Assembly: GCA_048772705.1 (NCBI GenBank)
Contig: JBLWGC010000230.1
Span: 558,001 to 622,000 of the forward strand
Direction of reading: 5' to 3'
Length of the DNA: 64,000 nt
From: Leidyana gryllorum EB-2025a
Lineage: Eukaryota > Protista > Apicomplexa
The notes beneath the pieces are model-generated. The model was not told where the DNA came from and ran no database searches. It saw nothing but the letters and a program-made list of their open reading frames with translations. The translations under genes and the position numbers were made by a program. The stretch's first letter is position 1; every line of letters starts with the position of its first letter. Shown in pieces: positions 18,295 to 62,992 of the stretch.

Positions 18295-21200
18295 CTATCT
18301 ACTGAAAGCATCATTCCATTGGGCGGATATGCTCGCTATGACCTGTTTGTCAACAGGTTGGATACAGTCATGCCACTGCTGCAGTATTCTACTCTGAACC
18401 CTCTCTCTTTGCCAATCCTTGAGACACATCTCAAACAAAGAACCCAAACGCAGATGCATCCGTGTTCGGGCCTCATCAGACAGTGTGTCCCGGCGCTGCT
18501 TTTTGGTCAAGTAATTGGCAGCCCACACCAACATCTCCCAACGGTCCGCCCTACTTGCTCGAGCTAACGCTTCTTGGCCTCGTGCTTTACCTTTCTTGAT
18601 ATATCCCCGGGTCAGCTCTTGGAGACTCTCAACCACCTCCCCCACATTAGTCATCTCCTCCCCGCCCTCAATCGCCGTCTCTGGCGCTGTCTCATACCCC
18701 TGCGACTCCAACGAACTCGTCGACACAGACAGCTGAGAACAGCTTGACCAGTTGCTCAGAGAGTCAGATGGCCCCACACCGCTTTCGTCTGGAAGCCGGG
18801 CCCTAAGCATCTCTGCCAACTCCTCGGGAGTGTAAAGATCCTCTCCACAGTTAGCTCTCCACAAACAGCTCATGTGCTGACTCTCGTCGTCCTTGTTCGG
18901 CCGCCCCAACACCATCACCGGCAACCCCAACTTGGACAACATCAAAGTCGCGCCCCAACTGCCAATCCTCTCCACCGCAAGCTGCCCATCCACCACATTC
19001 AGACAAAGGTACAAGTGACCGTTGAACAGCTTTTCATCAGACAGCTCGAAAAGGCTACAAATCTCTGCCGCGCTCAACCCTGTCGGGTGTTGAACTTTCT
19101 TGTACTTCTCTTCATGTAACATCCAATCCTCCCAATCCTCAATACTCTCCAACAAAGCGGCTCGCACTCGTGCCACCGTCTCCTGTGGCGCAGGCGCCGT
19201 CACTGCCAGAGGCTGCAGTGCGCTCGCCTCTGACTCGCTCAACTGGTACTCCATCCGCTTGAACCTCTTGCAGAGTATGGGATACAAATCATGCAGACTT
19301 TGGCGACTGCCGTCCACACAATGCAGAACTCGTAAAATGTCAGTTATGACAGAATTCAACCTCACAGCAATTCGCTGCCCCTTATACAACGTAATATAAC
19401 TCCCCGGGCCCTTGGCCATATGATACTGTTGAGGTGCCAACGCATCAGAAGCCCGCGCCTCAACCTTCCATCCATCAACGTGATATTGCCGCGACATTCT
19501 ACAGATCGATCGCACCACGTCACCACCAACCATTTGACGAATGTCAAACTTGTTAGCGTTGAACAAAAGTCGAATATGATCCGCCAGTGGATGCTGGTCC
19601 ACCAGAGGACATGTCCCTCTCGACCCCGACCCACTGTGCGAGCCTCCCACGCTCCTCATAAGAAGCTCCTCCAACGTCTCTTCCTCCACCGGAGCCAACA
19701 GAACCCCCTTACGGCTCGTCTTCCATGAACGGGACTTGGAACTTGAAGAAGTGGGGCTCTGATCCACAAACAACTTATTCGCGGCGACAGGGTATTTATA
19801 ACCAGAAACGGCTCGTCCGATAAAGCAATGAGACAAAGGCCGACCTTGATGCACTGCTGGAATCTTGTACAGAAACTCAAACTTCCCACACCCAAGCAAC
19901 ATGAAGAGCTCCTTAGGTTGTTTCTTCGTCCGGAACTTCACACCATAAACTGTTTTGCCCTGCGCTGAGTCCTCGATGGAAACAATGTTCACAAGGCTCA
20001 AGTCAGATGCTTGACTCAATCTGCCAACACAAAGAGGGCTTTGGGCCACCTTTTTCAGTATGCGAGAGGTAATCTCGAGATTGAGCGGCATCTCGACATG
20101 TGAGAGGCTGCTGATAGTGACTTTATCGTTGAGAGATTCGGGTGTACCCAACGACTCCATCAGTTCCCGGTGCATTTTGCCCACCAAAGAAATGTCAGCT
20201 TTCTGACTCCGGGTTTCCGGATTGGTCAATGCTGCGCGGACATACTGCGGTTCCACCCACAGAGTAAGTGGCGCCGTTTGAGCTGTATATCTCTTGGGCA
20301 CATCGTACAGGGCATCATGCACCGTTCCGCACACGACGGCGTTCTGATTGCTGACGGCTTGGATGTCGCCCCTCATTGTCTGTCTAATTCGGATTCGGTC
20401 TCCCAACTCAGGGTGGGTCTGACTGAATATCTTGGCGACCACAGCATACGATCCCTCTGACATTGCTTGAAGAGCTTCAACTTCATCCAAAGACAAGAAA
20501 ACCGTGTAGCTCATTCCACCCACACGTGTGTGCGGGGTGGAGACAGCTGTGACCCCTCTCAATGAGTGTGTCCCATCTTCGTTCGAGACAATTCGGGCCT
20601 GCCATGCTCGTGCAGCCGTCCGATTTGTCATGTCCACGAAGCCATGAGTGTAGAAATCATAGTAACATCCAGCCTTGACCTCATGATCCCATTCATCTTC
20701 TGTGGTGAAGGTTAATCGCACAGCTTCCGAGGTTTCCCCTTCTGCTGGCATCCATCGACCTCTTTGATCGACCTGAGCGAACTGGACGTCTTTGGGCATA
20801 TCCGTTGATCCCTTTGGCAGGACTACAACGGCTTCGAGGGGATGGAACCCATCAAAGTGAACTGCTGTATGGAAGTAACCCATATCAGCCACGAAGGCAT
20901 CGATACTTTGTTTTCTGGCACCCAGGTCGCTTGGCAGAGGTAAGACAGATGCGTAAGTTCGAGATCGTGACGTGCTCTCCGGTCGGCCAGCACCCTGGGT
21001 AGAAGAGTACGGTTGGAGACTAGTCAGATCAAAGCTTTTGAGATCCTCTCCTTCCAGCAAGAGGAAGTGCGATGGATCTTCCAGAACGCCTAAAGCGTAC
21101 ATCACACGAACAGAATTGAGCCGCTGCTTCATGAAACCCAAGCTGTTCACATCAATTGGGATGACGAAATGTTTCTGATAGGAATCTTCTCTCACGCATT

Positions 21201-24200
21201 CATCAACCCGAGCTTTCCAAGCTTGGAGACGCTGGAAATTCGTAGGGTTGGCGTTTGCATCAGCTTCTTCGAGAGCCACTGTGCTTACAACACGCGAGCC
21301 TGAAATTTGAAGGGAGCACTTTTTAACGTTGGGCATTTCCCCCTTGAAGGTCGTCCGTGGGGATGGAATAGACGGTACTCTGCGAGCATCGCGGAGGTAG
21401 GCATAGTAATCGCTGACGATTCGTAGATCTTCGGTGCTGAGTTGGAGAGACTCCCGGAACGTGATGTCGCTATGGAGCATGTTGGCAAGTTTGATGTGAG
21501 CCGTTCGGTTTTGGTTGATGCGTGGCCAGGTAAGGAGAGTGAGGACGCGTAGTTGTCGCATGATATCGTCGAGCGTATTCTTATCCACCGGTGCTTTCAC
21601 GGATCGGGCCCTGGTGAAGTTCTCGCAGAGCGAGGTGAATTGGACGGCCAGATCGTCGGTTTTTGTTGGGAAGGGCGCGTCCCAAGGATTAGACTCCCGA
21701 ATGTTCCGGAGCCACAGCTCTTGAGCAGGTGACACTTTTCCATCCTTCAAAAGGAAGCCAAGTCGCATCAGAGCAGCCCAACAGGCCCAGCCAGCCGGTC
21801 CCGGGCCGTGCAGAGCGCTGCGTGTTGGGGCTATATGGTGTACAGGCAACATGAGAAAGCTCGCGATACCCGCTAATCCGCGGTTGATGTTCGAGATTGC
21901 CTTGCACAACGGTTCGACCTCAATCCCAGGTCGCAAGATTTTTTCTTGATGGGCTTGATACATGTTTGAAGCCAAAGAGTACCATTTCTCCAGTGCGTCA
22001 CTGTTCCCCTCTGCGGCAACGACCTGATTTGCCAAGGACTGGAGGAATTCGGCAAAGTGAGGGGCGATTGTATTCTCCCATCCTCTCTTGGATGCGTCAA
22101 TCGCGTTCGGGAAGAGAGGGGACAAGTCGGGTAATCGTAGTGAGGGGGAGTCGGGGTCCAGTCGTCTCAGAAGACTTTTAGATTTGACGAATTGCGGAAT
22201 TGTCCTCTTGGCGACCGCCTGCTTCAAGTTGATGCGTTCAGTATCTGGTGTCCGCTCTGCCAGGCTGGTATCATTCAGGAGTTCCTGTGGATAGAGCCAA
22301 TTGAAACGTTTTCCTCTGATCTCCTGTGGAAAGGCGTTGAAGACGTCCTCGGGTGTGAACACGCTTCCTTTATCCTCCTGGTGGAGCTTCGACACCTCGA
22401 GAAAGAGGGGCGGCGGTATCACGTGATAAAGTTTCTTAGTCTTGGCGTGTTTCCAGCATGTCAAGTTTCCTCCTCGCAAAGCTTCATACTCCACGGCACC
22501 GATTGGCAAGACGACCTGTTTCGCTTGCACTGCCTGTCCGTCGCGATGGTTTTGTGTCCGCAAACGCTTAATAAGGACTTCGGACTCGTTTGGGACGTCC
22601 GCTAACTCGTGAACTTCGCCAAAGATATCGTGTTTCTCGAATAATACATCCCATTGATCGAAGGTCAATACCGACCCTGGCGTCTTGGGCAAGTCGCGCT
22701 GTATTTCGACAGGTGACTGTACATTTGGTACTGCCAATTGCTCCGAGTCTGACACTGAATCTTCTGCAATCTCAAGGTGCTCGGATTGCAGCTCTTGTCG
22801 GACCTCCTCAGAGCGGTGACTAGTTTCACCTGTACCCACTTGGTTCTCGGGCATGAAAATGACCGATTCGCATGGTGACTCTTCGCTCTGGCCTTGCAGA
22901 GCCTCCCTAACTGTCCCCTCAGTGCTTCCATCTGACAATGTGATTGACTCGGGATCTGACGTTTCCTCGCCTCTGTCAGACGTATCGGCGGGTGTAGCCA
23001 GATGCTGACAAGCGATATTTTCTTGGTCATAACCGATGGTCGGTGAACTTTCTGGTACAGGGGAGCGAACCCCAAAAACAGGCGACGGGCCCCGAGACGC
23101 GTGACGAGCCTCTTCCAGTCCCAAGAGGCTGTGGTCCTCGAACTCCGTGTCCGGCGACGGGGATCGAGAGGCATCGGGACTTTGACGGTCCAGTCCCGAA
23201 CGCCTGTGGTCCTGGAGCTCCGGGTCCGGCGACGGGCTCGAACATTCTTCCCCACTTTCTTCCAGTATTACTGGAAGCCCAAGGTCCTGCGAGTCCCAGA
23301 CGGGTGATGGGGTCCGAAATTCGTCTTCGCCCACCTCTCCGTTGGGTGACGGGGTCCGAGATCCGTTGGACCATTCTTCGTCTGCCACAACGTCAACAGC
23401 GTGTCGTGAGTACCAGTCCGGTGACGGGGACCGAGATGCGTTGTGCCATTCCTCTTGTGCCCCAATGTCTACAACCTGTTGTGGATTCCAGTCGGGTGAC
23501 TGAGATGTATTGCGCCATTCCTCTTGTGCCCCAACATCTACAACCTGTTGAGGGTCCCAGACGGGTGACGGGTCCCAAGATACGTCGGGAGCTTCTTCTG
23601 GTTCCGGACGGCTCAGGTGTACGGCTCCAGTCGGTACTCGGAACCTCGGTGTGTGTGGCACACCGTCATCTTTGCCTGCCCCCGCACGGGATTGCATGTT
23701 GGAGGTGGTGAAAACTTGCTCTCGGTCATTCTCCCACCACATTCTGTTGGAGGTGCTCGAGGTCACATTTTTGGACGACCATTCCGTGGACACGGTAGTG
23801 GACGAGTCGGTGGCCTGAGTCATGAGCTTTTCGTGTACAAATGGGAAACTTTGGTCAACCGAAGATTGGAGACCTCCAGTTATCCTCAGTGACTTGTCGG
23901 CCGACCCCGACTGCTGGAACTCGTAATCATGTAGTGAGGAGTGTTGGAACCGCGATGATCGATGGCGATCCGGGGTACAGCTCAGCTGGATATTCCCCGA
24001 CGACCTTGGACCCCTATCCTTCAAGAAAGCTAGAACCTCGGCTGGTGAAGACAGAGGCTTCACGGTGTCGGGCAGCGGTACCGTACGCGCGCCCACTGAT
24101 GGCTTGGAAGGACCCGAACCTGAAGAGCGGCACACATAGTTATTGTCAAGTTACTGCACACGTGTGCGATAGATGTTGGGGTGATAGGACTGGAGGGCGC

Positions 24201-38006: not shown

Positions 38007-40329
38007 CTAGGATCCACGCAGGATATCCAAAAAGGCGTGTTCTTGGGCTTGTCTGGCTTCAAGTGCCCCATTGAGGTTAGAGACCCACCGCCCGTGGGCC
38101 TGAGCGACAGCTTGACTGTCGGTCTCAGATCTCCCTTCTATTTGCCAATTCCCATCAAGCAGATCGATCAAAGCACTGTTCACAGGCAATCCTACATTAC
38201 CCAATACTCCACCACCAGTCAGCATCTGACTGTTGGGTCGCTCCTTTTGCTCCACCGGGCCGGCCAGAGCACAAAAGGGGCGTTTTCTGCTGCAGGCTTG
38301 GGAGCACTCTGTTTCTGCATCATCGGATTGGAAGGGTCCTTCACCATGGAGCCTTATGCCGGGCGCTGTCAGAAGGTTTCCGCCATTTTGCAGTCGAATT
38401 CTCTGTGGCCTCCACATGACTTTCTGATCAACGCAGCCAAGAAAGTCAGGTTCCACTGCGATCGCTGGAGGATACTCGAAGGTCACGGTGGAGTCCCCAG
38501 CACCGCACGCACAATGAGGTGTGGGCATTGTCAGGAAGGTGGCAGCAACACTGTGATCGGTCCAGCTCTTCTGTCCCTCAATTAATGTTGAAACATCCAA
38601 AAAGCTCAGATGACGCTTTTCACTCTTGACGATCTCATCTTCCATTTCCTCTTCTTCCACGGCTCCAAGTCGCTGCAAAACTTCCTCCGGGTCGATAGCC
38701 CGCAACTTCTGCCGCGGGACTGCATCCGTTCGGTATACTTCGCGCTTTGCTATTGCCGTTTGAACCTCCGACATGACATCCTCGCATTGGAGATACTTTA
38801 TATTCTGCAAACACACATTTCTCGCTGAGTCGCCGCCGAGTCTCACTCACCAATTCCGCCTTTCGAAGCAAAAGAATGCCCCATCGTTGTCGCAGCCCAA
38901 AGTCTCCGGACCCGCGCAGATTTCCATCCGTAAGATGGACACTGTCGACATATGGAGAGAACTCGTTCAAACAGAAATTGAAAGGGTTCCGCGCTTGTCC
39001 CTCGCCGCCCTCACTTTCCCACTCATCCATCCATTGAGCAGTGGGTCGGAAGCACACAGCGCGCGGCCATTTGTAATACAACACTTTTGTTGTTGGGTGT
39101 CTCTGGAAAGTGGTCAGTGGGGCCACCATCAAATAATAATACGACTCGTCCTCTATCCATTGTAGCCCGTATGGAATCTCCGCCACCCCATAATAGTCCA
39201 AGTAGGGTAACTGACAGAGTGGGATCATTGGGTGTTGTCGTGTGTCGAACAGCAAGATCGACTGAGTCACAGCCGACAAGGCTGCCAGCAAGGTGGGCGT
39301 CTGAGGATGCGTCACCAAGGCGCTGAACCCAAAGTCATCCATGTTGGATTCATCAGTGAAGAATCGAGTGGTGTATGCCGCTGCGCAGGTATCTGCGAGC
39401 GGCCAACGACAAACCAATGTGTCTTGGGTCACATTCCAGAGCCAAAGACGTCTTCCAGCGAGCCAATAATGCCCATTTATATTCGCGTGTGTAATGGCAG
39501 TGAACACCTCGTCCCGAGCACACGAGTCGCCCTCCATATACATATGTCGTGTGAGACCCTCAATCTTCGCTAATCTGTCATCTGGAGTGACCAGCGCTCT
39601 CGGGGTCGGAATCAGCGAGAACACTCTATCAGGGCCTCCGAGTCTGCGTTTCTTGGAGGTGTAGATGACGTCATCGAACACCAAAACCTGAGCTGGTTTG
39701 ACCGCCAGAATCACGAGTTGCCCAACGGTGAAGGGCGAGAGACTCATTGACAACCAGTGGCGTTCCAAAGGGTCCTCCCACTCGAGTGAATTTCGCACCT
39801 CGATATTCGTCGACGCTCCATCGACTCCGATTGGCCGGCCTGCCCCATACTCGACTATTTCAGGGTGAAAGGCGACGTAAACAGCCAAACTGTATCGCCC
39901 TCTGACAGCAAAGTATCCAAAGTCCGCGTTGGGATAGATGGACAGACTCGACTGGACCTCCAGAGCTGACATCCACCGAAATACCTCGGGTGTGTCACTA
40001 CAGCAAGGCTCAGGTTGTTGATCCACGGTGAACCGAATACTGTTGAGCAGCGATCCCTCAATGGAACAGCAAAGCCACAAGTCACTTTCTCCTCCACTAT
40101 AAGATTGGGAGGTTGAATCTGCTGCTTCTTCGGTGTCACTCGGAACCGAAATCATATATGGGAGCTGGAGGTAGGCCCTCAAGAACCTGTTGGAACTCGC
40201 ACCATAATTCTGGCAATAAGCACCAGGCCTCCGTACAGACGTTCGTTGGGCTTTATCCCGAGCGGGTTGCCAGAAATTAGCGTAGGCGAAGGCAGTTGGG
40301 GGTGTCAGTAAGCCTTGGAGCACTGTCAT
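38007..40329 (-). CDS. Beta-propeller protein, TAF1C/Rrn6-like (tentative)
   Basis: ORFs 38635-40368 and 38007-38846 are joined by a GTGAGT..TGCAG intron (KAEL|NIKY). Motifs FAVRGRYSLAVY, LSMSLSPFTVGQL and ILLFDTRQHPMIPL. Confidence 0.5.
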
Positions 40330-40364
40330 ACATGTTTTTTTTGGGATCAGGGGGGGAGCGAGGT

Positions 40365-41497
40365 TCAATCCACTCCTACTTCAATCACATAAGCTCTGTC
40401 GGACTCCTGTTCTTTGGTCATTGTGATACTCAATGTGGTGTCTATATCGCTCGAAGCCTCTAACGGTTCCGGGAAGAGAATAACTGTCTGCTGCCAGTGA
40501 GTTGAGGGAGCGTGTGGACTGGTGTCCAGTTCAATTCCGCCTGGGAATACAACTTTGAACCATAACGCTGCCCCTTCGATTGAGACCGGCCCCTTAATTG
40601 TAATTGGAGTCTGTTTGGTCAGAGCGCGGAGCTGATCCAGTGTGACAGAGGCCAGATTGAGGTCCGCAACTCGCATATGAGTGCAATGATCAATGGAGCT
40701 CGGCGTGATTGTCTCGATAATGGGAGATCCAATCACATCAGCTGCTTCAGAGAAGGCTTCAGCCAACGGGGCGACACAGATTCCATGAAAACGGTGTCGA
40801 TCGTTGAACCACCCGATGTGCTTGTAGTGCACTTCTCGGTCATGCACCAACGTACAGTCAATTGTGGCTTGACAGGGGAGTAAAAGGCCTCCGTGGGTCG
40901 CCACGTCAAAGTCAACAGGCAGATTGGGGCCATTAGTCCACACCGAACCCGTCGAACTGCCTTTTCTCAAAAAGTGGTCACGTGCGAAGATCACCGAATC
41001 CAACATGGACTCGTGTAAAAGATATTGCCCCATCCACTCAGAGACGATTGCATCAACTTTGGTGAACTCGCGTTCTGCAGTGGAAGATTTAAGTGACCAG
41101 AAACGTTTGTACTCACCCTCAACGTCAACAGAAGGCAACTCCTCCACCTGGCACTGCAGAACCACAATCCGTTCAGCCAATCCATTTGCTTCGGCAACGC
41201 GACGCGTGACCATCGCCATCACGGGGTTTGCTTCCACAGCAATGACTTTCGCGGCCTCAGTGTAGCGGGCGACCAGACAACTCAGTATTCCGCTTCCAGA
41301 CCCAACATCCATTACAATTTTGCCTCTGTAGCGCAGAAGCACTCCGTGTCAATATGTACAGCGCGCGCACACACTCACTTGAGGTAAGGAGCAACAGCTT
41401 TGATGGCAGCTGCGTAGTTGTCGACTCTGGGAGCGTCCATCAGCATCTGCTGGTGGACTTTGAGGCTCCCATAGCTGTTGAAGTACTCCCCAGACAT
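40365..41497 (-). CDS. Type I protein arginine methyltransferase (divergent PRMT1/6-like)
   Basis: YFNSY..VHQQMLMD, VMDVGSGSGILS, IVSEWMGQYLLHESML, THWQQT. Confidence 0.92.
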
Positions 41498-41565
41498 CTC
41501 TAGCCTTCAAGGATTTTTTTGGCCGGAAGCCATGTGCACGCACAAAGTAGCACTTGACAGAAGTA

Positions 41566-42276
41566 ATGAGAGATCTAGAAGATAAGATGAATTCGGTCGG
41601 CACCGCCGATTCGGACGAATCCATCGAGGGATCTTCACCTCCAGATGTCAATTTGAGCGACGAAGGGTACCATGAGGGAGAGGCGTTGGGATCGCCTGGT
41701 GTACTCGAAGAACCTTTAGTGCTGGAAGCGATTGGCACATATAATGGGGTGGGGAAGGCATCCGCCTTAGCGTGGTGGGAACGGCTGCGCAAGTTTGAAA
41801 TAGAACAAATCCACGAGAATCTAAGTGACCCAACTGTGCAGGAGCTATTAAAGGGTGATGCTTTGGTTTGGTTCAACGCCAATCGACCACGGTGGCGTGA
41901 CGAGTTTTTGACACATTTCACCTTTACCAAAGACAATGCCTGGTTCTGGCTCCACAACCCGGTCCAGGCCGAGGGAATGTCGGTAATTCAGTACTTGGAA
42001 GAGTGGAAGTGTGCAGCAAATCTATGGCCCGGCAGGACCGTGAAGAATGGCGTGAAGCGATGGGTACTGGGTGTGAAAGATCCAGGCGCACAAAGGATCA
42101 TGAAGGCTCACAAAAGCTCGGAGCCGGGATCACCAGAGGATTTGTTTACATGGATAGCGGAGTTAGCCGCTGTCAATGGGAGACATAGCAGTAAGGTGTT
42201 TAACAGACCCTTCAAACCGGCCAAAGTGCATCGGAAAGTGAAAGCGGCACATCAGAATAGCAATTTGGACGCATGA
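41566..42276 (+). CDS. Stand-alone Ty3/Gypsy-type retrotransposon Gag capsid-like protein (236 aa, intronless)
   Basis: Ordered Gag motifs YNG..ALAWWERL, LLKGDALVWF, WRDEFLTHF, QAEGMSVIQYLEEW (major-homology-region-like) and RWVLGV. No CCHC knuckle, protease, RT, integrase or LTR nearby. Confidence 0.72.
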   Translation: MRDLEDKMNSVGTADSDESIEGSSPPDVNLSDEGYHEGEALGSPGVLEEPLVLEAIGTYNGVGKASALAWWERLRKFEIEQIHENLSDPTVQELLKGDALVWFNANRPRWRDEFLTHFTFTKDNAWFWLHNPVQAEGMSVIQYLEEWKCAANLWPGRTVKNGVKRWVLGVKDPGAQRIMKAHKSSEPGSPEDLFTWIAELAAVNGRHSSKVFNRPFKPAKVHRKVKAAHQNSNLDA

Positions 42277-42354
42277 GGGGGTAGCACACGTGTGTTTGAC
42301 TTAAACTCGGCATGAAGTAGCCTAGAAAAAAATTGACTTTGTATAGTCCTTCCA

Positions 42355-42648
42355 ATGGGCAATGCTGCCTCCCAATTACAGGATGCTAATCAACAACGGA
42401 TGCAGACGATGATGATCGTGATGTTTTCACTGATCGGGGCAATAGTCGGGGCGGGGCTATTAATATTTCTGATAGTGACATGGTCAAGGGTTTCTCGAGA
42501 GCGGGCGGAAGCGGACAGGAAACTAGCTAGATCGCTGGCGCGAACACAAAATAGAGCGGATCTCTTGGAGGCAAGAATCTTGGCTCAAGCTGTCGCTAAA
42601 GAAGCTGAGCAGCAGCAGCATATCGCCCCGATGTACCACGTTGTATGA
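42355..42648 (+). CDS. 97 aa predicted N-myristoylated single-TM protein with basic/helical tail
   Basis: MGNAAS (MGxxxS), hydrophobic IVMFSLIGAIVGAGLLIFLIVTW, then SRVSRERAEADRK and a helical tail; A7 tract ~25 nt before the ATG. Confidence 0.7.
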   Translation: MGNAASQLQDANQQRMQTMMIVMFSLIGAIVGAGLLIFLIVTWSRVSRERAEADRKLARSLARTQNRADLLEARILAQAVAKEAEQQQHIAPMYHVV

Positions 42649-42675: not shown

Positions 42676-44111
42676 TTATGTTGCAACAACCAGGCTTGGC
42701 TGATTTTCGCTCTCGCTTGCCGCCAGTGTAGTAGTATCTGTAACTTCCTCTTGCGACTCTGGTAACGTAACAGGGGTTGTAGAGTGCCGACGATAATCGG
42801 GATCAAAAACGAATCCATGGGTATAGGCCACAATGTAAGGGTTGCCAGGATTAAGTTTGACAATTCGTTGGACGGGAAGCGTTGATGTGGTGGCTGTCGG
42901 TGTCAAGGCAAAGGAAGAGGGTGAAGTGGTGGCTCGGGTGGTGTCACCATCGTGGTTATCTTTTCCACCACCACTATTGGAGCTGAAGCCCCGTCCGAGC
43001 ATTTTGGAGAGTGATAGGCCTGCGCCACGGAGGAAGGATCCCACGCCACGGGGTTCGACAGCGGCGTTCCGTCGGCCACAGTCTCCGTCTGAGCTGCCTG
43101 GAGTATTGCTTCCTTCCTCCGAGTCAGTTTCCGCACTGTCGGCAGCCGCCATCTGCTGGACCTTTTCGCGCACCTCAGCTTCGGCCAATTTGTTCATTTC
43201 CACCGCATTCCAAACTGCAGCAGCGCAGTCGGTCGATAGGGGTTCGGGGGCACAATCGGTGTCCGGGGCCATGTGGGAGGTTATATGGCTGAGATCTTCT
43301 TCCTCTTCTTCGTTGAGAGCGACCTGCGCGATGCACGCGTCCTGTTCGAGTTCGTTTTCGAATAGACTTTCGAAGCGATATCGCAGATCTGCGCTTCGGC
43401 ATTTGAGCGTAAAGTTGGCGATCGCAGGTAAATGTAGCGCCAGGGCCATGTGCTGGGCCTTGAGGGCTGCAAGTCCCGGTAGCGGGACAAACTTTATAGA
43501 GCGGATGGCCACATTGCTGAAGGCCGTTGTCTGATAAAAGTTGTACAAAGCGTGTCGTTCGTGTAGAGAATCGCCGATACTGATGACCACCTTTGGCTCT
43601 CCGTGTTCCGCATTGGCAAAGTACTCGGTGAAGATCTGAGCAAAGGTCTGCTTCTTCCACTGCACCGGATCGCGACTGACTGCCTGCACTAAGTCCTTAG
43701 CCGACACGCGTCTGATGGGTTCCACGACGCCCCATAGGGTGGGCATATAGCGGAGACACGATGTTCTGATCCAATCGCTTGATCCGTTGGTGATCATCAC
43801 CACACGCCCACAGCGGGCTGCAACTTCGAGGGTTACCTTGGCCAAGTCCGCTAAAGCTTCGAACTGCACCCTGTTGATGAACAGTCCCTCAGTCAATAGC
43901 TCTCTCTCTGCTTTGCAATGCAACGATCTTACCCAATCTCCTCATCGAGTTCTGGTCCGTTCACTGCAGGCCATTGTACCCAAGTCCCTGTACCACTCCG
44001 TCCTACTACAGTCTTCGACCTTTCCCGTAAGATCGTAGTAGGCAGGATGGTGTCATCCCAGTCAAACACCACCAATGTATGTGCCGCCAACGCAGGCGGA
44101 GCCCACTCCAT
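42676..44111 (-). CDS. HAD-superfamily protein (DWDDT type), spliced
   Basis: Motif I VVFDWDDTILPT, motif II ITNG, WKK, motif IV SIGDSLHE, SIKF. Confidence 0.85.
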
Positions 44112-53400: not shown

Positions 53401-55926
53401 ATGAGTGCCACGGCACGGACAAGTCGGAAACGTCCATTACCCACCACATTCCAGAATTCTCAGGAGGCTAAAAAGCCCATTACATTAAGCTTCATTGATC
53501 AGTCGAGTTCTCGAGCATGGGGGAACCCAGGTTCTATGGAAGTGCCCGTAACGGCGGCTCCCTTGATGCAGGAGGCCACATCTGGTCCGTTGGACTTTAG
53601 CAATCTTGTAATGAACGAAAATGATGATGAACGACCGATCCTAGTGTGCCCTAATGGCTATATATTCCTCGAAACGCGCGGACCAATGAGCGCGGAGGCG
53701 AGCGAGTTCCTGATTGCGACAGCGGAACCTGTATCTCGTCCAGAGTATATTCACGAGTTCCAAATAACAATCTTCTCGCTGTATGCGGCTTTATCAATGG
53801 GGATTGATATCGAGGACTTGTTGAGTGGGTTGAAGCGGTATGCCAAGAACGTTCTGCCGGAAACTTTGGAGCACCAAATCCGAGAGCATGGCCATCGATT
53901 CGGGAAAGTGAAGCTTGTTCTGCGGGACGGGAAGTACTTTATAGAGACGCCCTTCCGAGACGAGCTGAGTCGGATGTCTGAGAATCCAATAATCAGCAAA
54001 GCGCGTCTCCAAAAGACACTGACTATGCGCTCTGTGAAGAGTAACGCGCCTGTTGACGCGGTCGCGCACGCGGCTGAGCAGCAGGCGGCTGCTTCTCAGC
54101 CAGCAGACTTCCTGGTGGAAGAAGTACAGCAGCTTGACGATCGCATTTTCACGTTGGTTTTGGACAAAACCAAGGAGGACGCCAATAAGGCGGGTGGCGA
54201 CAAGGCGGGAGCTGGTGGTGAGCAGCAGCAACAGCCCGCGGCTCCTCGTCAAGTGGTATACTCATTTGAGATCCACCCGATGATGGTGACTGCTGTGAAG
54301 GAGGCTGCGCTGCGTCAACTTCACCGCCCACTGTTGTCCGAGTATGACTTTTGGCGGGATACCCATTCGCCGAATCTGGACATTGCTCTGAAACAGAGTA
54401 CGAAGGTCCGTTATTATCAGGAGAGAGCGTTGCGTAAAATGTTCTCGAATGGTCGAGCGCGGTCGGGAATTATCGTTTTGCCTTGTGGTGCTGGAAAGAC
54501 GCTCACCGGGATTACTGCTGCCACGACTATAAAGAAAAGCACTATGGTTCTGACATCCAGTAGTGTTGCTGTCGATCAATGGCGGCGGTCCTTCACGGGT
54601 TTCACGACTGTGGATCCCTCAAAGGTTGTTGCGCTGACTGCCGACTCCAAAAACGACCTTCCAACGGATGCGTGTGTGGTTTGTTCGACCTACACTATGA
54701 TGGCGTACTCTGGCAAGCGAAGTGAAGCGGCCGAACGCATTATGAAACAGATTCAAGAAAAAGATTGGGGACTCTTAATATTCGATGAGGTGCAGTTCGC
54801 TCCGGCCCCGGCGTTTAGACGGGTGAACACAATTTGTCGGTAAGTTTCAAGTTTAGGCGGCCTGCCCCTTCACCATGCCCTCCCTGCGCAGGAGTCACTG
54901 CAAGTTGGGTCTTACGGCTACGCTGGTGCGAGAGGACGATCTGATTAACGATCTGCAATGGCTAATTGGGCCCAAGTTGGACGAAGCTAACTGGTTGGAG
55001 CTGCAGGAGGCGGGATTCCTGGCGAAGGCTAAATGTTCTGAAGTGTGGTGTCCGATGACCTTTGAGTACTTCCGGGCATATCTGCAGTCGTCACCGGTGA
55101 AACAAAGAAAGCTGTGGACCTGTAACCCGAACAAGTTGCGCACGTGCGAATATTTGGTTCGGTTCCACGAGGCGCGGAAAGACAAAGTGATCGTTTTCAG
55201 CGATAATCTGTTCGCATTGAAAGAAGTGGCGTGTGCTCTGCATCGGCCCTTTATCAGTGGAGAGGTGACGCTGCCGGAGCGAATGGTTATCATCAACAAG
55301 TTTAAGACATCTCCAACAATGTCGACAATCTTTTTGTCAAAAGTCGGAGATAACGCCATTGATATCCCCTGCGCCAATGTTGTTATTCAGATCAGTTTCA
55401 ACTTTGCTTCGAGGTGAGTTACGTTTGATCTTTCATCCATTCAAGCTGCGCTCAGGCGTCAAGAGACTCAGCGTTTGGGCCGTATATTGCGTCCGAAGCC
55501 AACTAACGATCCTAACGAAGAGTTCAATGCATTCTTCTATTCGTTGGTCAGCAAAGATACACAGGAAATGGCCTATGCCGACAAAAGACAGCAGTATATC
55601 ATTGATCAAGGATATGCCTATAAAGTACTGCCGATGACAGTCTTCCCAATGGCTCAAGAGAAACTTATATACGACAGCCCACAGAAACAAATGGAAATGC
55701 TGCAGAAGATATTCTGTTCCTCAGAGACTGGAGGCGACCTGGAGGAGGATGATGTGCAACTGAATCAAAGGTACGTTTGGTTCTGAGCATTTGGGCAGTG
55801 ATTGGTGGTGGTTGCAGTGGAGTCAGCGTTGAGGAGGAACTTCCGAGCGCTGAGCAGCCCATGAGCACGGCTGGAGCTCGATCCCGGTCCAACAGAGCAA
55901 CAGAAGTGTTCAAATTTTACAACTAA
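53401..55926 (+). CDS. ERCC3: TFIIH helicase XPB, spliced
   Basis: AEPVSRPEYIHEF, SLYAA, RARSGIIVLPCGAGKT, DEVQ, GLTATLVRED, QRLGRILR, FYSLVSKDTQEM. Confidence 0.97.
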
Positions 55927-55958
55927 GAGTAGCCTTATTTTTTGCGGTAGTGGGCACG

Positions 55959-57315
55959 ATGGTGGTCGAGCGGAAGCGGGTGCACACGGTGGGAGGACCT
56001 GTTACTACGGTCAATAAGTATCGACCCAACGAACTTGATGCCCAATGCACCGAGTTCGCCAGTGACTGGGGCGAACTTGAAATCCCGGAGAACAAGGATA
56101 CCGACTATTACTTCAACAGCTATGCCCACTTTGGAATTCATGAAGAGATGCTCAAGGACGGCATCCGCACTGGATCCTATCAACGCGCTATTCTGAACAA
56201 CAAGCATCTTTTCAAGGGCAAAATCGTACTCGACGTCGGCTGTGGCACTGGCATCCTTAGTATGTTCGCAGTCCAAGCCGGAGCCGAGCACGTCTACGGC
56301 ATCGAGTGCAGCGAAATCGTCCATATTGCCAACAAAGTCATCGCACAAAACAATATGCAAGACAAGATCACCATCATCCACGCCAAAGCCGAAGAAGCCG
56401 AACTACCCGTGGAAAAAGTCGACATTATCGTCAGCGAGTGGATGGGCTATTTCCTACTCTACGAGTCCATGCTCGATACCGTCCTCTACTGCAGAGACAA
56501 GTGGCTAGTTCCTGGAGGCCTCATCTTCCCAGATAGAGCCACCCTCCACATCGCAGCTATCGAAGACGCAGAGTACATGGTAAGCAGTCACATACATGTC
56601 ATAACTTCCAGGGGGTCACGCCAACTACCACCACCTGTTCGAATGACCAATTTAATTCGTCGCCGGTTACTTGATCCCCAATCAATGCTTCCCACAATCT
56701 GCCATGATCAACTTGTCAATCTAATCTCGTTTTGCTGGCAGAGAATGAAATTTGATTTCTGGGATAGGCCATATGGTCTCGACTACACCCCAGTCAAGAA
56801 GTGCATCCAGGAGGAGCCCACTGTCGACATCGTGCAAGGCCAATCCATAGTCACCGACACATGCTGCATTCTGGACCTCGACCTCAATACCTGCACAATC
56901 GCTGATACTAATTTTGTCGCCCCCTTCCGCCTGCAGATGCGCCGACAGGATATGGCCCATGCTTTCGTAAGTTGCTCGCGTCAAAGCCACCCACCCGCAA
57001 AACTCCTTACAGATCAGTTGGTTTGACTGCACCTTTTCTGCTTGTCACAATCCAGTTGTCTTCTCCACTGGCCCTTTCAACGAGGGCACGCATTGGAAAC
57101 AATGTGTGTTCTATATGGAAGAGCCTGTTACAGGGATGCGAAATGGTGAGTTCGACATCTGTGGCCGGTCAATATTCTGCTCAGAGGAAATCAAGGGTAT
57201 GATAGCTGTACGGAAAAACGCCAGGAATCATCGCGATTTGGACATCAAATTGGCTTACAATTTCGAGGGACAATGCATGAGAACCGAAAAGGTTCAGTAT
57301 CATCGGCTTCGTTGA
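55959..57315 (+). CDS. PRMT1: Protein arginine N-methyltransferase 1, spliced
   Basis: DYYFNSYAHFGIHEEMLKD, VLDVGCGTGILS, SEWMGYFLLYESML, THWKQ, RDLDIK. Confidence 0.96.
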
Positions 57316-57446: not shown

Positions 57447-58995
57447 ATGCCCGCAAACTGCAGTTCGATCAACGCTGATCATCGGAATATGGCCTATGAC
57501 CTCGCTGAGGTCGACATAATCCGTTGCGTTGTCAAAAGCGAGGGAAAAAAGGTACACACACGAAATATCGAATCCGCAAATAGTGCTTAGGAAGTTCGCG
57601 TACAGGCCTTTTTTGTGCTCAAGAAGGACTCCAATGTGAAAGGGCGCAAACAGAAAAGTTTCAGCATTTCGGTGAGCTTTGATCTATCATATAGATCTAT
57701 CAGACAAGAAACAGAAATTTGGCCTCGATGGGGCTTGGTCTCGTGCCAATCGTTGCAAAGAGTTCATCGAGCAGCTTGGCCGTTTTCCTGTGGATGAGAA
57801 CGAGATTGAGGCTTTCCAGGGCAAGAGCCTGGAGGTAGCACCATATAGCGGTGAGTGGTGGCACCAGCGAGGTCGTAGGCAATTGTGTGTGTGTGTGTCA
57901 GAGAACCGTCCACCCAATGCCACTGAATGGCCCCCATATCTGCAGTCAGTCAACAAACAACGTCGCATAGTCAAAGATTATGGCTCCGTACTGCTCGATA
58001 ACACCGGAGGACCATCTCCAACATCACCATCAGGGTCCAAATGGAGAGATCCCCATCATTACCAAGCCAACACTCCCACTGCAGCGCACCCCCCTCATCG
58101 ACGCGGCCTCAACAAAGTTTTGAGTAATCCTCCAACATTAGATTTGAACTCAGGCGGAGTCAAAGGAGGGGCAGGACCAGCCCGCAGCTCTCTGGGAAAT
58201 GCCTATTTCCCATGCCCTCCACCTTTGGATAGTCACAGTGCAGCCTGCTTGAGCACACACCATTGTTTCGCGAATCCCAATATACCTCCCTCACCAGCAG
58301 GCCGGACAAAGCTGTTGAAACAACTCAGCGCGGACCACCTACGTTACCTATTCCGATTCCTGGAGCCCGCAGGGCTGAGTGCGTTGGAAAGGAGCTCGAA
58401 ACATTTACGGCAGCAAGTGCAAGATACGGAAGCATGGAAGCTCGTTTTCTTCAATTGCATACCTCACATGGTGGATTTGGCTCGCCTGAGTTCGTTATCT
58501 CAACAGAGAATTCTCTTCCCGTTCGAGAAGGCATCAGGATTGCTGTATAAAGGTTTCTTTGCCTTTGAGAGTGCCACACGGCATAGTATATTATGGCGAG
58601 ATTTACGCTCCTCTGCTGGAGCTACTTATGAAGATAGGTTACGGAGTCACGAGGACGAGGAAATGTGCAGCAGCACAATTCGGAGGTGTCTCCAATCCAT
58701 CAGCTACATGTGTCAGCGCTCAGCGGAGAAGGCGGCGGAGACCGGAATGGCACTGGTGAAGCAGGAAGAGTCTGAAGAGTTCGATGCTGACCGGGCGACT
58801 ACGGAGACGACAATACTAAAAAGCTTCCATGCTCGAATAAAAGCGACATTGGACAAGCTGGAGCTGACGTCAGTGGCGACGGCAGCCCGGCTGCCATACG
58901 GAGGACCCCCTCCGCCGCCTCAAATTACAGCTGCCGCAGCGGCTACAGGTACCCCTATTCTGCCCAGTGTAGCGTTGCCGCAGTTCCACAGCTGA
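57447..58995 (+). CDS. AP2-domain (ApiAP2-like) protein with an F-box-like motif
   Basis: Removing introns 57552-57590 and 57672-57714 gives VRVQAFFV...GRKQKSFSIS|KFGLDGAWSRANRCKEF. LLKQLSADHLRYLFRFLEPAGLSALERSSKHLR..DTEAW follows at ~58312-58440. Confidence 0.7.
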
Positions 58996-60779: not shown

Positions 60780-60901
60780 GACACGCGTGTGTTTACATCG
60801 TGTGCCGGACGAGACGAGCTGACTAAGCTTCACATATGCCCCTATAGCCAGATCTTCAACAAGTGTTCGTTCTGTGGTGCAGCCCGGCGTAGGTGTGTGC
60901 T

Positions 60902-62992
60902 ATGCCTTTTTCTTTGTTCCTCCTGGCCGTGCCTTTCCTGTGGGCACGAGCAGGAGCTCGTGGACCCACCCCTTTAGTGGGAACTGCTCTTGTTAGGACC
61001 TCTCCCAGACCCGAACATCCGCCTCACTACAAGGTGCGCGAGATCGTCATCCAAGCTGAGCCGGATCGATCATGCCCGAGCGGATTTGAGCAGAGCGGGG
61101 CCAACTGCTTAGCAGTGGAGTCCATCCCGCCCACCCAGCAATGCCCGCCTGGTTGGCAATATAGTGATGATCGCTCCTTCTGTATTGGGTACTCAGCTGT
61201 CGATCCTGAGCACTCTTGTGATCTTGGTCAGCCAGGATATGAGTCTTGTATTCGTCAGAAAAGCGTCCCTAAGGTCCTTGTTTGCCCAGAAGGCTTCCTG
61301 CTGAAGAAGAACCTCAAGGAGTGCGTGCGTGACATCCCTCATGCTCCTTTAGAAGTTTGCCCTCCTGGAGTACGGTACGCTCATGGATCTTGCATCACCG
61401 TTAGAACAGAGATGCCCCATACTCGTTGCCCCCACGACTTCCAGTTAGTGGACGGGTCTTGTCAGAAGGTGATCAGACAACCTATCTTACGTGTCTGCCC
61501 TCCTGGCTACACGGCCAACGGAAAGAAAGGGGAGTGCGAACGTACAATTGTCCAGCAGCCTTCTAGGCGGTGTCCAGCTGGTTTTGATTTAAAGGGCGGT
61601 GACTGCGTGGCCGAACGTCATGCTGCCCCGACCTTTGTCTGCACCAAGGGAAAGATGGCTGAGGGCAACAATTGCGTCATCAGCCATTCTGCCAGTCCGC
61701 AGATCGCTTGCTCCAAAGGAATGCAGCTCAATCCTAAGTCTGGAATGTGCGAACGAGATGATGTTAAGCCTCCTCTTGCCGAGTGTACCAAAGGCACCTT
61801 GTACAACCCCATCACCAACCAGTGCGGTTCAGCTAACAAACTCAAACAGCCCAACTTAGCTTGCCCCCCGAACTATCGCTTTGTTGGAAAAACATCATGC
61901 GTTCAGCACCAGCAGGAGGCCCCTCAGAAAGTTTGCCCACCGGGATACGAACTGATCGGCAAGGAGGAGTGCCGCCGTCAAGAGAACAAACTTCCGCAAG
62001 GCCGTTGCCCTCGTGGTAGCCAGCTGATTGGCAAATTCTGTGTGTCTGTTCAAACCGCCCCCTTCGAATTCCTGTGCGAAAAGGGCGCCGTCTTGACTGG
62101 CAAACAATGTCTCAGCAAAGCCACTGCTCAACCCACCATTAAGTGTCCCAGCCCCTTAACGCTCTCTCCTGACGGAACCGCTTGTTTGGGCAGTGAAGAT
62201 GTGGCACCTACTGTTGCCTGTCCTCCCAACACGTCGCAACGTGCGGATGCGAACGGACTATTGTGTATGGTGGCCAGCGAGGAGCCTGCTGCCCGCAGTT
62301 GTCCTCCGAATATGCTTATGGTCAACGGCGAGTGCATTGAGCGCATTGCTGCTCAGCCCAGCACTGCTTGCCCTCCTGAGTACTTTGAGGATTTGCGTAC
62401 TGGTCGGTGTTTCAGCAGCGAGGAGGCACCTCAGCGTGCTTTCTGCCCTGTTGGATTCAAGCTGGTCGGGAACCGATGTTTGAAGCGCGAGCAGACTCCA
62501 CTGGTTCCCATTTGCCCTCCGACGTTCACGTTGACGAAGGGAGTTGGTGAGGATTTGATCTGCGCCAAGGAGACTGTGGTTCCGTTCCTTGAGCTTTGCG
62601 CATTTGGCTTCCAGTTAGAGAACGGAGTATGTCTGGCGAAGAAGCTTCAGTACGAGTTTGATGAGCACGACGTCGAGGAGCAGGGACCTGAGGAGAAATT
62701 GAAGGACATTGAGAGTCCGATGCCGACGGCTATGCCTCAAGTTACAGAAGCCGATATTGAAGTGAAGATCGATCGCCCTATCGTACAGAAAGGTTTGGTT
62801 ATGAGGAATGAGCCGATCGTCCTGAGCGGTCCAGCGAGCGAGGTTGCCAGAAAGCAGGCCATATTGGCTGCTGGAGGTAGCATTGCTGATTTGGGTGCCG
62901 ATGTTCAGGTCGAGTACGCGCCTCCTCAGCCAGCTGCTCGCAACACGAACAACCTGGGAGCTTTATTGGCGGCTAGCATGAGTCACCATTGA
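60902..62992 (+). CDS. Oocyst wall protein-like (COWP/OWP-type Cys repeats), intronless
   Basis: Signal peptide MPFSLFLLAVPFLWARA; about 22 units of C-P-x-G-(F/Y)-x-L-x2-4-C with ~23 aa spacing. Confidence 0.88.
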   Translation: MPFSLFLLAVPFLWARAGARGPTPLVGTALVRTSPRPEHPPHYKVREIVIQAEPDRSCPSGFEQSGANCLAVESIPPTQQCPPGWQYSDDRSFCIGYSAVDPEHSCDLGQPGYESCIRQKSVPKVLVCPEGFLLKKNLKECVRDIPHAPLEVCPPGVRYAHGSCITVRTEMPHTRCPHDFQLVDGSCQKVIRQPILRVCPPGYTANGKKGECERTIVQQPSRRCPAGFDLKGGDCVAERHAAPTFVCTKGKMAEGNNCVISHSASPQIACSKGMQLNPKSGMCERDDVKPPLAECTKGTLYNPITNQCGSANKLKQPNLACPPNYRFVGKTSCVQHQQEAPQKVCPPGYELIGKEECRRQENKLPQGRCPRGSQLIGKFCVSVQTAPFEFLCEKGAVLTGKQCLSKATAQPTIKCPSPLTLSPDGTACLGSEDVAPTVACPPNTSQRADANGLLCMVASEEPAARSCPPNMLMVNGECIERIAAQPSTACPPEYFEDLRTGRCFSSEEAPQRAFCPVGFKLVGNRCLKREQTPLVPICPPTFTLTKGVGEDLICAKETVVPFLELCAFGFQLENGVCLAKKLQYEFDEHDVEEQGPEEKLKDIESPMPTAMPQVTEADIEVKIDRPIVQKGLVMRNEPIVLSGPASEVARKQAILAAGGSIADLGADVQVEYAPPQPAARNTNNLGALLAASMSHH

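Follow-up and report, generated by a model that had tools for sequence, protein, structure and literature searches.

We report a stand-alone, single-exon gene in a 64,000-nucleotide (nt) stretch of DNA (contig JBLWGC010000230.1 of assembly GCA_048772705.1, positions 558,001 to 622,000 of the forward strand; hereafter the window, to whose first letter all coordinates refer) and propose, with moderate confidence, that it is a host-resident gene of a gregarine lineage derived from the Gag capsid of a retrotransposon. The gene occupies 41566-42276 on the plus strand and encodes a protein of 236 amino acids (aa). Its domestication is argued from the gene context together with one expressed homologue of the same layout, P0121 of the gregarine Blabericola migrator. 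An earlier reading made from the letters alone (the sequence-only reading) had described the locus as a host-captured capsid gene in an apicomplexan; the gregarine origin of this sole homologue makes an apicomplexan setting likely and is its only support.

A single-exon gene and its homologue

The open reading frame (ORF) runs over 236 codons plus a stop codon, from the ATG at 41566 to the TGA at 42274-42276, and both the ORF list and the sequence bear out its description as uninterrupted and intronless. On the 5' side an in-frame stop at 41548-41550, 16 nt before the ATG, prevents any extension of the ORF without splicing, and the start codon of a divergent arginine methyltransferase (PRMT) gene is only 68 nt away, which leaves no room for a further 5' exon. 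On the 3' side the TGA is followed by two more in-frame stops ahead of the next ATG (42355), and neither of the other frames is open; the ORF therefore has no read-through or frameshift continuation.

The length of this Gag-like ORF is weak evidence when taken alone, because about 0.11 open frames of 241 codons are expected by chance in the window. Measured against the codon usage of the Pfam-supported genes of the window, its own frame has a log-likelihood of +0.124 per codon and the other five frames score -0.06 to -0.61; the reference genes themselves range from 0.02 to 0.31, which includes the Gag-like ORF. We conclude that the ORF is coding because of this in-frame codon bias and because of a homologue with an E-value of 3.8e-11, and that it is a real, conserved gene is close to certain. 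That the frame is open by chance and yields no protein, as the expected number of such frames and the commonness of long antisense ORFs in the window might suggest, is extremely improbable: the presence of a homologue at this E-value in the transcriptome of another organism effectively refutes it, and the frame-specific codon bias speaks against it as well.

This homologue, P0121 (283 aa), was the sole true match in a phmmer search of 1.8 billion representative proteins. In a BLASTP comparison the two proteins share 33% identity over 141 residues (E 9e-20), with residues 141-277 of P0121 aligned onto residues 94-226 of the ORF, and most of the identity falls within residues 94-175 (43%) and the tail motif (52%). 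The second phmmer match, P0122, is a repeat protein that aligns over a short W-rich stretch only and was rejected as spurious. P0121 was also the only protein returned by word-indexed searches, for which the ORF and the full-length alignment of both proteins (A1) were used, and a scan of the JGI metagenomes and IMG/VR with A1 gave no relatives. P0121 is a EukProt entry from the B. migrator transcriptome, where it is encoded on a contig of 2,009 nt with a coverage of approximately 324; it is recorded under three accessions with identical sequence, and an exact look-up in contig and cluster collections found no genomic record of it; the Gag-like ORF and three other ORFs of the window gave no exact match there either. 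The host of B. migrator, a eugregarine, is the Madagascar hissing cockroach, and washed trophozoites (40-60, in two RNA extractions) were the source of its transcriptome (PMC8051059). The homologue is thus expressed in B. migrator trophozoites; this expression is that of the homologue and not of the window's own gene.

The ORF and P0121 have a common layout, with an acidic N-terminal tail, a Trp-rich core, a basic C-terminal tail and no zinc knuckle. In the ORF, the N-tail (residues 1-55; 41566-41730, plus strand, as for all parts of the gene) contains 15 D/E versus two K/R. It is probably disordered, judging from its charge and from the AlphaFold model, in which it has a low predicted local distance difference test (pLDDT) score and is mostly without secondary structure. 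The N-tail of P0121 is longer, and both have an isoelectric point (pI) of 4.05. The core (residues 56-205; 41731-42180) has 10 Trp in 150 residues and is proposed to be an all-helical, capsid (CA)-like domain, with approximately 10 helices predicted in AlphaFold models that are themselves unreliable. It is followed, at the place where a zinc knuckle would be expected, by the basic C-tail (residues 206-236; 42181-42273), with eight K/R versus one D/E and a pI of 11.75. These values and the single Cys of the ORF agree with the acidic and basic tails and the missing CCHC knuckle described before. All Gag-like motifs listed in the sequence-only reading are likewise present in the order given there: YNG at residue 59, GDALVW (part of LKGDALVWF) at 97, WRDEF at 110, QAEGMSVIQY at 134 and WVLGVKDP at 166. 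The heptapeptide KVFNRPF at residue 210 (42193-42213) is identical in both proteins, which end 16-20 residues later. Conserved between the two cores are the motifs [FY]xG, GxAxxW, Qx4SVxxY and W[LV]xG[LV]KDP.

A sub-threshold sequence link to the Gag capsid

Three different references for Gag, i.e., the Pfam model Retrotrans_gag (PF03732), Drosophila Arc1 and the Gag part of an errantivirus-like element, align with this small family in one and the same register, and no competing family emerged. P0121 matches Retrotrans_gag and no other Pfam family, over model positions 2-96/97 and residues 137-226 of the protein. This match has an E-value of 5e-4 when all of P0121 is scanned, which falls to 2.5e-4 with residues 90-283 and to 8.9e-5 with residues 125-235. 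The counterpart of the matching region in the ORF is the core part from approximately residue 90 to 171 (41833-42078), which is 43% identical to P0121.

To compare the family with known structures, profiles were built from the two proteins at full length (A1), over the core (A2) and over the core without tails (A4), and run against 177,635 distinct PDB sequences. With A2, the only matches at E <=10 were the Drosophila Arc1 entries 6s7x (E 0.18) and 6tap (E 0.33). With A4, the same two entries took the top two places (E 0.11 and 0.22), and with A1 the Arc1 capsid domain 6s7x ranked second (E 0.46). The Arc1 alignments share one register, in which G-x-A-x-x-W and the following W...F are paired, and they cover the N-terminal part of the stretch from residue 90 to 171 as well as the segment before it. 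Searches of the PDB by phmmer with the ORF and with residues 90-283 of P0121 gave nothing relevant. E-values of this size are not significant for a blind search; the Arc1 match would nevertheless seem to bear weight, as the hypothesis was stated beforehand and Gag-type entries are a tiny fraction of the PDB.

Reference Gag proteins were gathered from IMG/VR with a DNA pattern for the CCHC knuckle, which yielded one gypsy-type element, L013 (358-7518 on the minus strand of IMGVR_UViG_3300008122_000198). This errantivirus-like element has a single Gag-Pol-Env frame of 2,387 aa with Pfam domains for protease, reverse transcriptase, RNase H, integrase and a Baculo_F-type envelope protein. When A2 was aligned by hhalign with the first 400 residues of L013, YNG...GDALVWF of the ORF paired with FTG...GAALKWF of L013, with a score of 22.7 (P 0.019, probability 2.5%). 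This score ranked first among 351 comparisons; none of 250 control ORFs scored above 21.7 and none of 100 shuffles above 20.7. The control ORFs were taken from the same IMG/VR loci. A HMMER search with the A2 profile against all 2,294 ORFs of the loci from the CCHC scan gave nothing significant, and no reference Gag proteins were found near a sunflower PRMT gene. Both the control ORFs and those of the HMMER search include some from retrovirus-like or badnavirus-like contigs. The Gag part of L013 has no match to PF03732, so the Pfam model misses genuine gypsy-type Gags, and the failure of the window ORF to match it is accordingly weak negative evidence.

Apart from L013, the CCHC pattern fetched mostly badnavirus-like polyproteins, knuckle-bearing RNA-dependent RNA polymerases (RdRPs) of RNA viruses and retrovirus-like Gag. 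The retrovirus-like contigs (L055, L056, L060, L064 and L066) carry retroviral Gag, matrix or protease domains, and L033, L037, L071 and L117 encode an RNA-virus RdRP domain and, C-terminal to it in the same ORF, CCHC zinc knuckles.

Host gene or retrotransposon remnant

On these comparisons we consider a derivation of the gene from gag to be quite probable. A number of observations weigh against it and, the small size of the family apart, would also suit a lineage-specific helical protein of gregarines that does not derive from Gag and whose Trp- and Phe-rich helices match Gag proteins by chance. Every Gag match is sub-threshold. The ORF and four sub-pieces of it have no Pfam hit even at E 10, and the ORF thus fails the gathering score of PF03732 (24.1 bits), while P0121 reaches 20.7-23.1 bits and stays 1 bit below it. 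The PDB E-values of 0.11-0.46 are not significant alone, and the hhalign score, at its low probability, exceeds the best control by only 1 point. The family counts two members. A CCHC knuckle, searched as C-x2-C-x(3-5)-H-x(3-5)-C, was found in neither protein; many co-opted gag genes are without a knuckle, so that its absence is no argument against a Gag origin. The canonical major homology region (MHR), with the consensus Q-x3-E-x7-R, is absent from the ORF and P0121, and the label 'MHR-like' given to Q-x4-SV-x2-Y in the sequence-only reading was overstated, as this motif does not fit the consensus. AlphaFold2 models from one or two sequences are all-helical and unreliable (pLDDT 42.6 and 44.2), and with these models Foldseek found no match at E <=0.001 in the PDB and BFVD. 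The C-terminal domain of rat Arc at rank 22 (E 6.4) and the HTLV-1 capsid at rank 34 are uninformative at such E-values, and at this pLDDT the Foldseek results as a whole are meaningless. For the two-lobed CA fold suggested earlier, there are thus all-helical models of low reliability and no fold match. The suggested comparison with Retrotrans_gag and Arc profiles gave sub-threshold matches for P0121 and for the core profiles, which ranked Arc1 at the top, and none for the ORF itself. Against mere chance similarity, the Pfam model, Arc1 and the errantivirus-like Gag agree with each other and were the only or the top matches in their respective searches, each of them pairs up [FY]xG, GxAxxW and W..F in this order, P0121 covers the whole Pfam model, and a bona fide Gag such as that of L013 escapes PF03732 too. 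A helical protein without Gag ancestry thus appears unlikely to us, while keeping some weight.

Once Gag derivation is granted, a host gene is likely, in preference to the debris of an element. The gene sits in a compact housekeeping block with flanks of just 68 and 78 nt, its frame is intact and its codon usage host-like, and the same truncated layout and C-terminus are found, and expressed, in a second organism. Since the three-part layout is expressed in B. migrator, the gene probably predates the split of the window and B. migrator lineages and has been retained under selection; it would then be a co-opted gag gene. The only signs of purifying selection are indirect, namely that both frames are intact and that the two proteins, at 33% identity, have conserved ends. 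In the opposing view the ORF is a leftover gag that survives from a decayed or truncated Ty3/gypsy insertion, or else the gag of a non-autonomous element; it would be free of host selection, and P0121 would be the gag of a related active element in Blabericola. Many gypsy-type elements have a separate gag ORF, and P0121, known from a transcript alone, could in principle be such an ORF of an active element whose pol was left unassembled, which counts against a host gene. The claim that gypsy-type elements occur in gregarines is also correct, as such elements with long terminal repeats (LTRs) are reported from Ascogregarina and Gregarina (PMC9141347). Yet the 64-kb window contains no second copy of the ORF; no LTR-like direct or inverted repeats were found between 36 and 48 kb of it, and no reverse transcriptase, RNase H, integrase, protease or gag Pfam domains among the scanned ORFs, which comprised nearly all stop-to-stop ORFs of at least 130 aa. 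Together with the closed downstream frames, this confirms the reported absence of pol genes, LTRs and frameshift continuation. Moreover, neither protein has a knuckle, both end at a corresponding position beyond KVFNRPF, and the P0121 contig of 2 kb is not element-sized. The phmmer search of 1.8 billion representatives, which had no length limit, gave no match to a Gag-Pol polyprotein or any other Gag, and in sequence the gene thus appears unlike a member of an active element family. A leftover gag is, in our estimation, less probable still than a protein without Gag ancestry. For the host-captured capsid gene this means that its stand-alone, intact state without pol or LTRs and its matches of Gag type stand, with all of these matches below threshold.

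Gene neighborhood

The 68 nt between the two divergent start codons (41498-41565) are common to the Gag-like gene and the PRMT gene, whose ATG on the minus strand is at 41497, so that the distance claimed earlier is exact; the region presumably acts as a promoter. Within it are a T7 tract (41514-41520) and, at 41532, an upstream ATG that is out of frame. The T7 tract is present as described, whereas its proposed link to gene starts is unsupported and was rejected, as the window shows no enrichment of such tracts (10 versus 7.7 expected). The upstream ATG opens a 17-codon upstream ORF (41532-41585, plus strand) that overlaps the start of the Gag-like ORF and is relevant only if transcription starts upstream of it.

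The PRMT6-like arginine methyltransferase gene (40365-41497, minus strand) has Pfam PRMT_C and methyltransferase domains and consists of exon 1 (41379-41497), a GT-AG intron of 53 nt (41326-41378) and exon 2 (40365-41325). These bounds were read off the sequence, and exon 2 alone, not joined to exon 1, was used for searches. Its homologues are of PRMT6 type with 31-37% identity, none being above 37%, and a metagenome scan with the PRMT exon gave no relatives. A PRMT tree was dominated by a long-branch artefact and did not help to place the organism. A second arginine methyltransferase gene (55854-57023, plus strand), less than 15 kb away, has stronger PRMT_C and methyltransferase matches than the PRMT6-like gene. 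An antisense ORF of 202 aa (41349-41957, minus strand) overlaps the 5' half of the Gag-like gene and the region of PRMT exon 1; with a codon score of -0.05 it is probably spurious.

Downstream, a spacer of 78 nt (42277-42354) with an A7 tract (42326-42332) and the two in-frame stops mentioned above separates the gene from an ORF of 97 aa (42355-42648, plus strand), which is in the same frame as the Gag-like gene with three stops in between. This ORF begins with MGNAAS, resembling an N-myristoylation site, has one hydrophobic, transmembrane-like segment and a weak codon bias (+0.05), and neither a Pfam hit nor a match in the protein collection was found for it.

The window as a whole is gene-dense, with a GC content of 47-57% per kilobase. 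Its Pfam families confirm that the gene lies among housekeeping genes: they include an ABCA transporter, a sugar transporter, importin-beta, eIF3c, XPB/ERCC3, two PRMTs, IPK, LCAT, a cation-efflux protein, a proteasome subunit, Rpb3, an AAA ATPase and an actin-like protein. Scanning the window for Rfam families and tRNAs gave no hits. An open frame of 1,951 codons (18298-24150, minus strand) has no Pfam domain at E <=0.001, and four other long ORFs are without a family match (38638-40380 and 42679-43941 on the minus strand; 57676-58992 and 60893-62989 on the plus strand).

Proposed function

In the model that we propose, the core would descend from the CA region of a Ty3/gypsy-type Gag, with loss of the nucleocapsid zinc knuckle and of the entire pol. 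In the manner of Gag capsid domains, its CA-like lobes would self-associate to give oligomers or a lattice, while the basic C-tail with KVFNRPF might stand in for the nucleocapsid by binding nucleic acid or an acidic partner, and the acidic N-tail might modulate self-association or binding. The product could then assemble into Arc-like particles, or else restrict the gypsy elements of gregarines in a dominant-negative, Fv1-like manner. We consider the formation of a closed capsid doubtful, and a capsid function like that of Arc or PEG10 is a speculation by analogy. The most far-reaching version, in which gregarines keep a co-opted Ty3/gypsy capsid gene whose product still forms Arc-like particles that carry RNA or protein between parasite cells (e.g., syzygy partners) or into host gut cells, is rather improbable. 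If it were true, no earlier case of gag co-option and no earlier endogenous system of virus-like particles would have been described in a protist.

Comparison with known systems

If confirmed, the gene would add a new major lineage to those with co-opted Ty3/gypsy gag genes, since a conserved, expressed and pol-less Gag-capsid-like gene of gregarines would extend gag co-option to the Alveolata. In a survey of 2,011 eukaryotic proteomes, Wang and Han described 14 deep co-options of LTR-retrotransposon gag genes (Crtg), seven in animals, four in plants and three in fungi, and none in protists, which were under-sampled (PMC8321522). The present gene may therefore be the first example of gag co-option from a protist, its capsid link being below formal significance. 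Genes of this kind escape notice, as PF03732 detects neither the window ORF nor the Gag of L013. The gene is also a candidate for asking whether host proteins of capsid origin have evolved more than once in parasite genomes that are very compact, where particle formation or defense against the few gypsy elements that such genomes carry are candidate roles.

Among sequence families, Retrotrans_gag is the closest reference, being matched by P0121 over the whole model to the exclusion of other families, yet P0121 stays below its cut-off (23.1 versus 24.1 bits) and the ORF is not detected. With errantivirus-like Gag and Arc1 the order of the motifs is shared ([FY]xG, GxAxxW, W..(E)F, Qx4SVxxY, WxxG[LV]). 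Unlike Ty3/gypsy elements, the ORF is without zinc knuckle, protease, reverse transcriptase, integrase and LTRs. Similar to the Crtg genes, gag would be kept without pol and in more than one lineage; co-option in that survey was based on synteny or on agreement of gene and host phylogenies, plus evidence of selection (PMC8321522), whereas the present case is known from two protein sequences.

With regard to function, host proteins derived from capsids are known to interfere with related elements, as Fv1-type Gag-derived restriction factors do. A similar role is conceivable here because gregarines carry gypsy elements (PMC9141347); this is a functional analogy that implies no sequence relationship. 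Compared to Drosophila Arc1 (6s7x, 6tap), the acidic N-tail and the basic KVFNRPF tail of the ORF did not align, and the E-values of 0.11-0.46 are not significant. Compared to the co-opted gag genes of animals in general, the host is a protist, and capsid assembly and RNA packaging are putative. What the gene would have in common with Arc1 as well as with animal Arc, PEG10/RTL, PNMA and Gagr is its organization, i.e., a stand-alone cellular gene in which only the capsid-like part of Gag has been retained.

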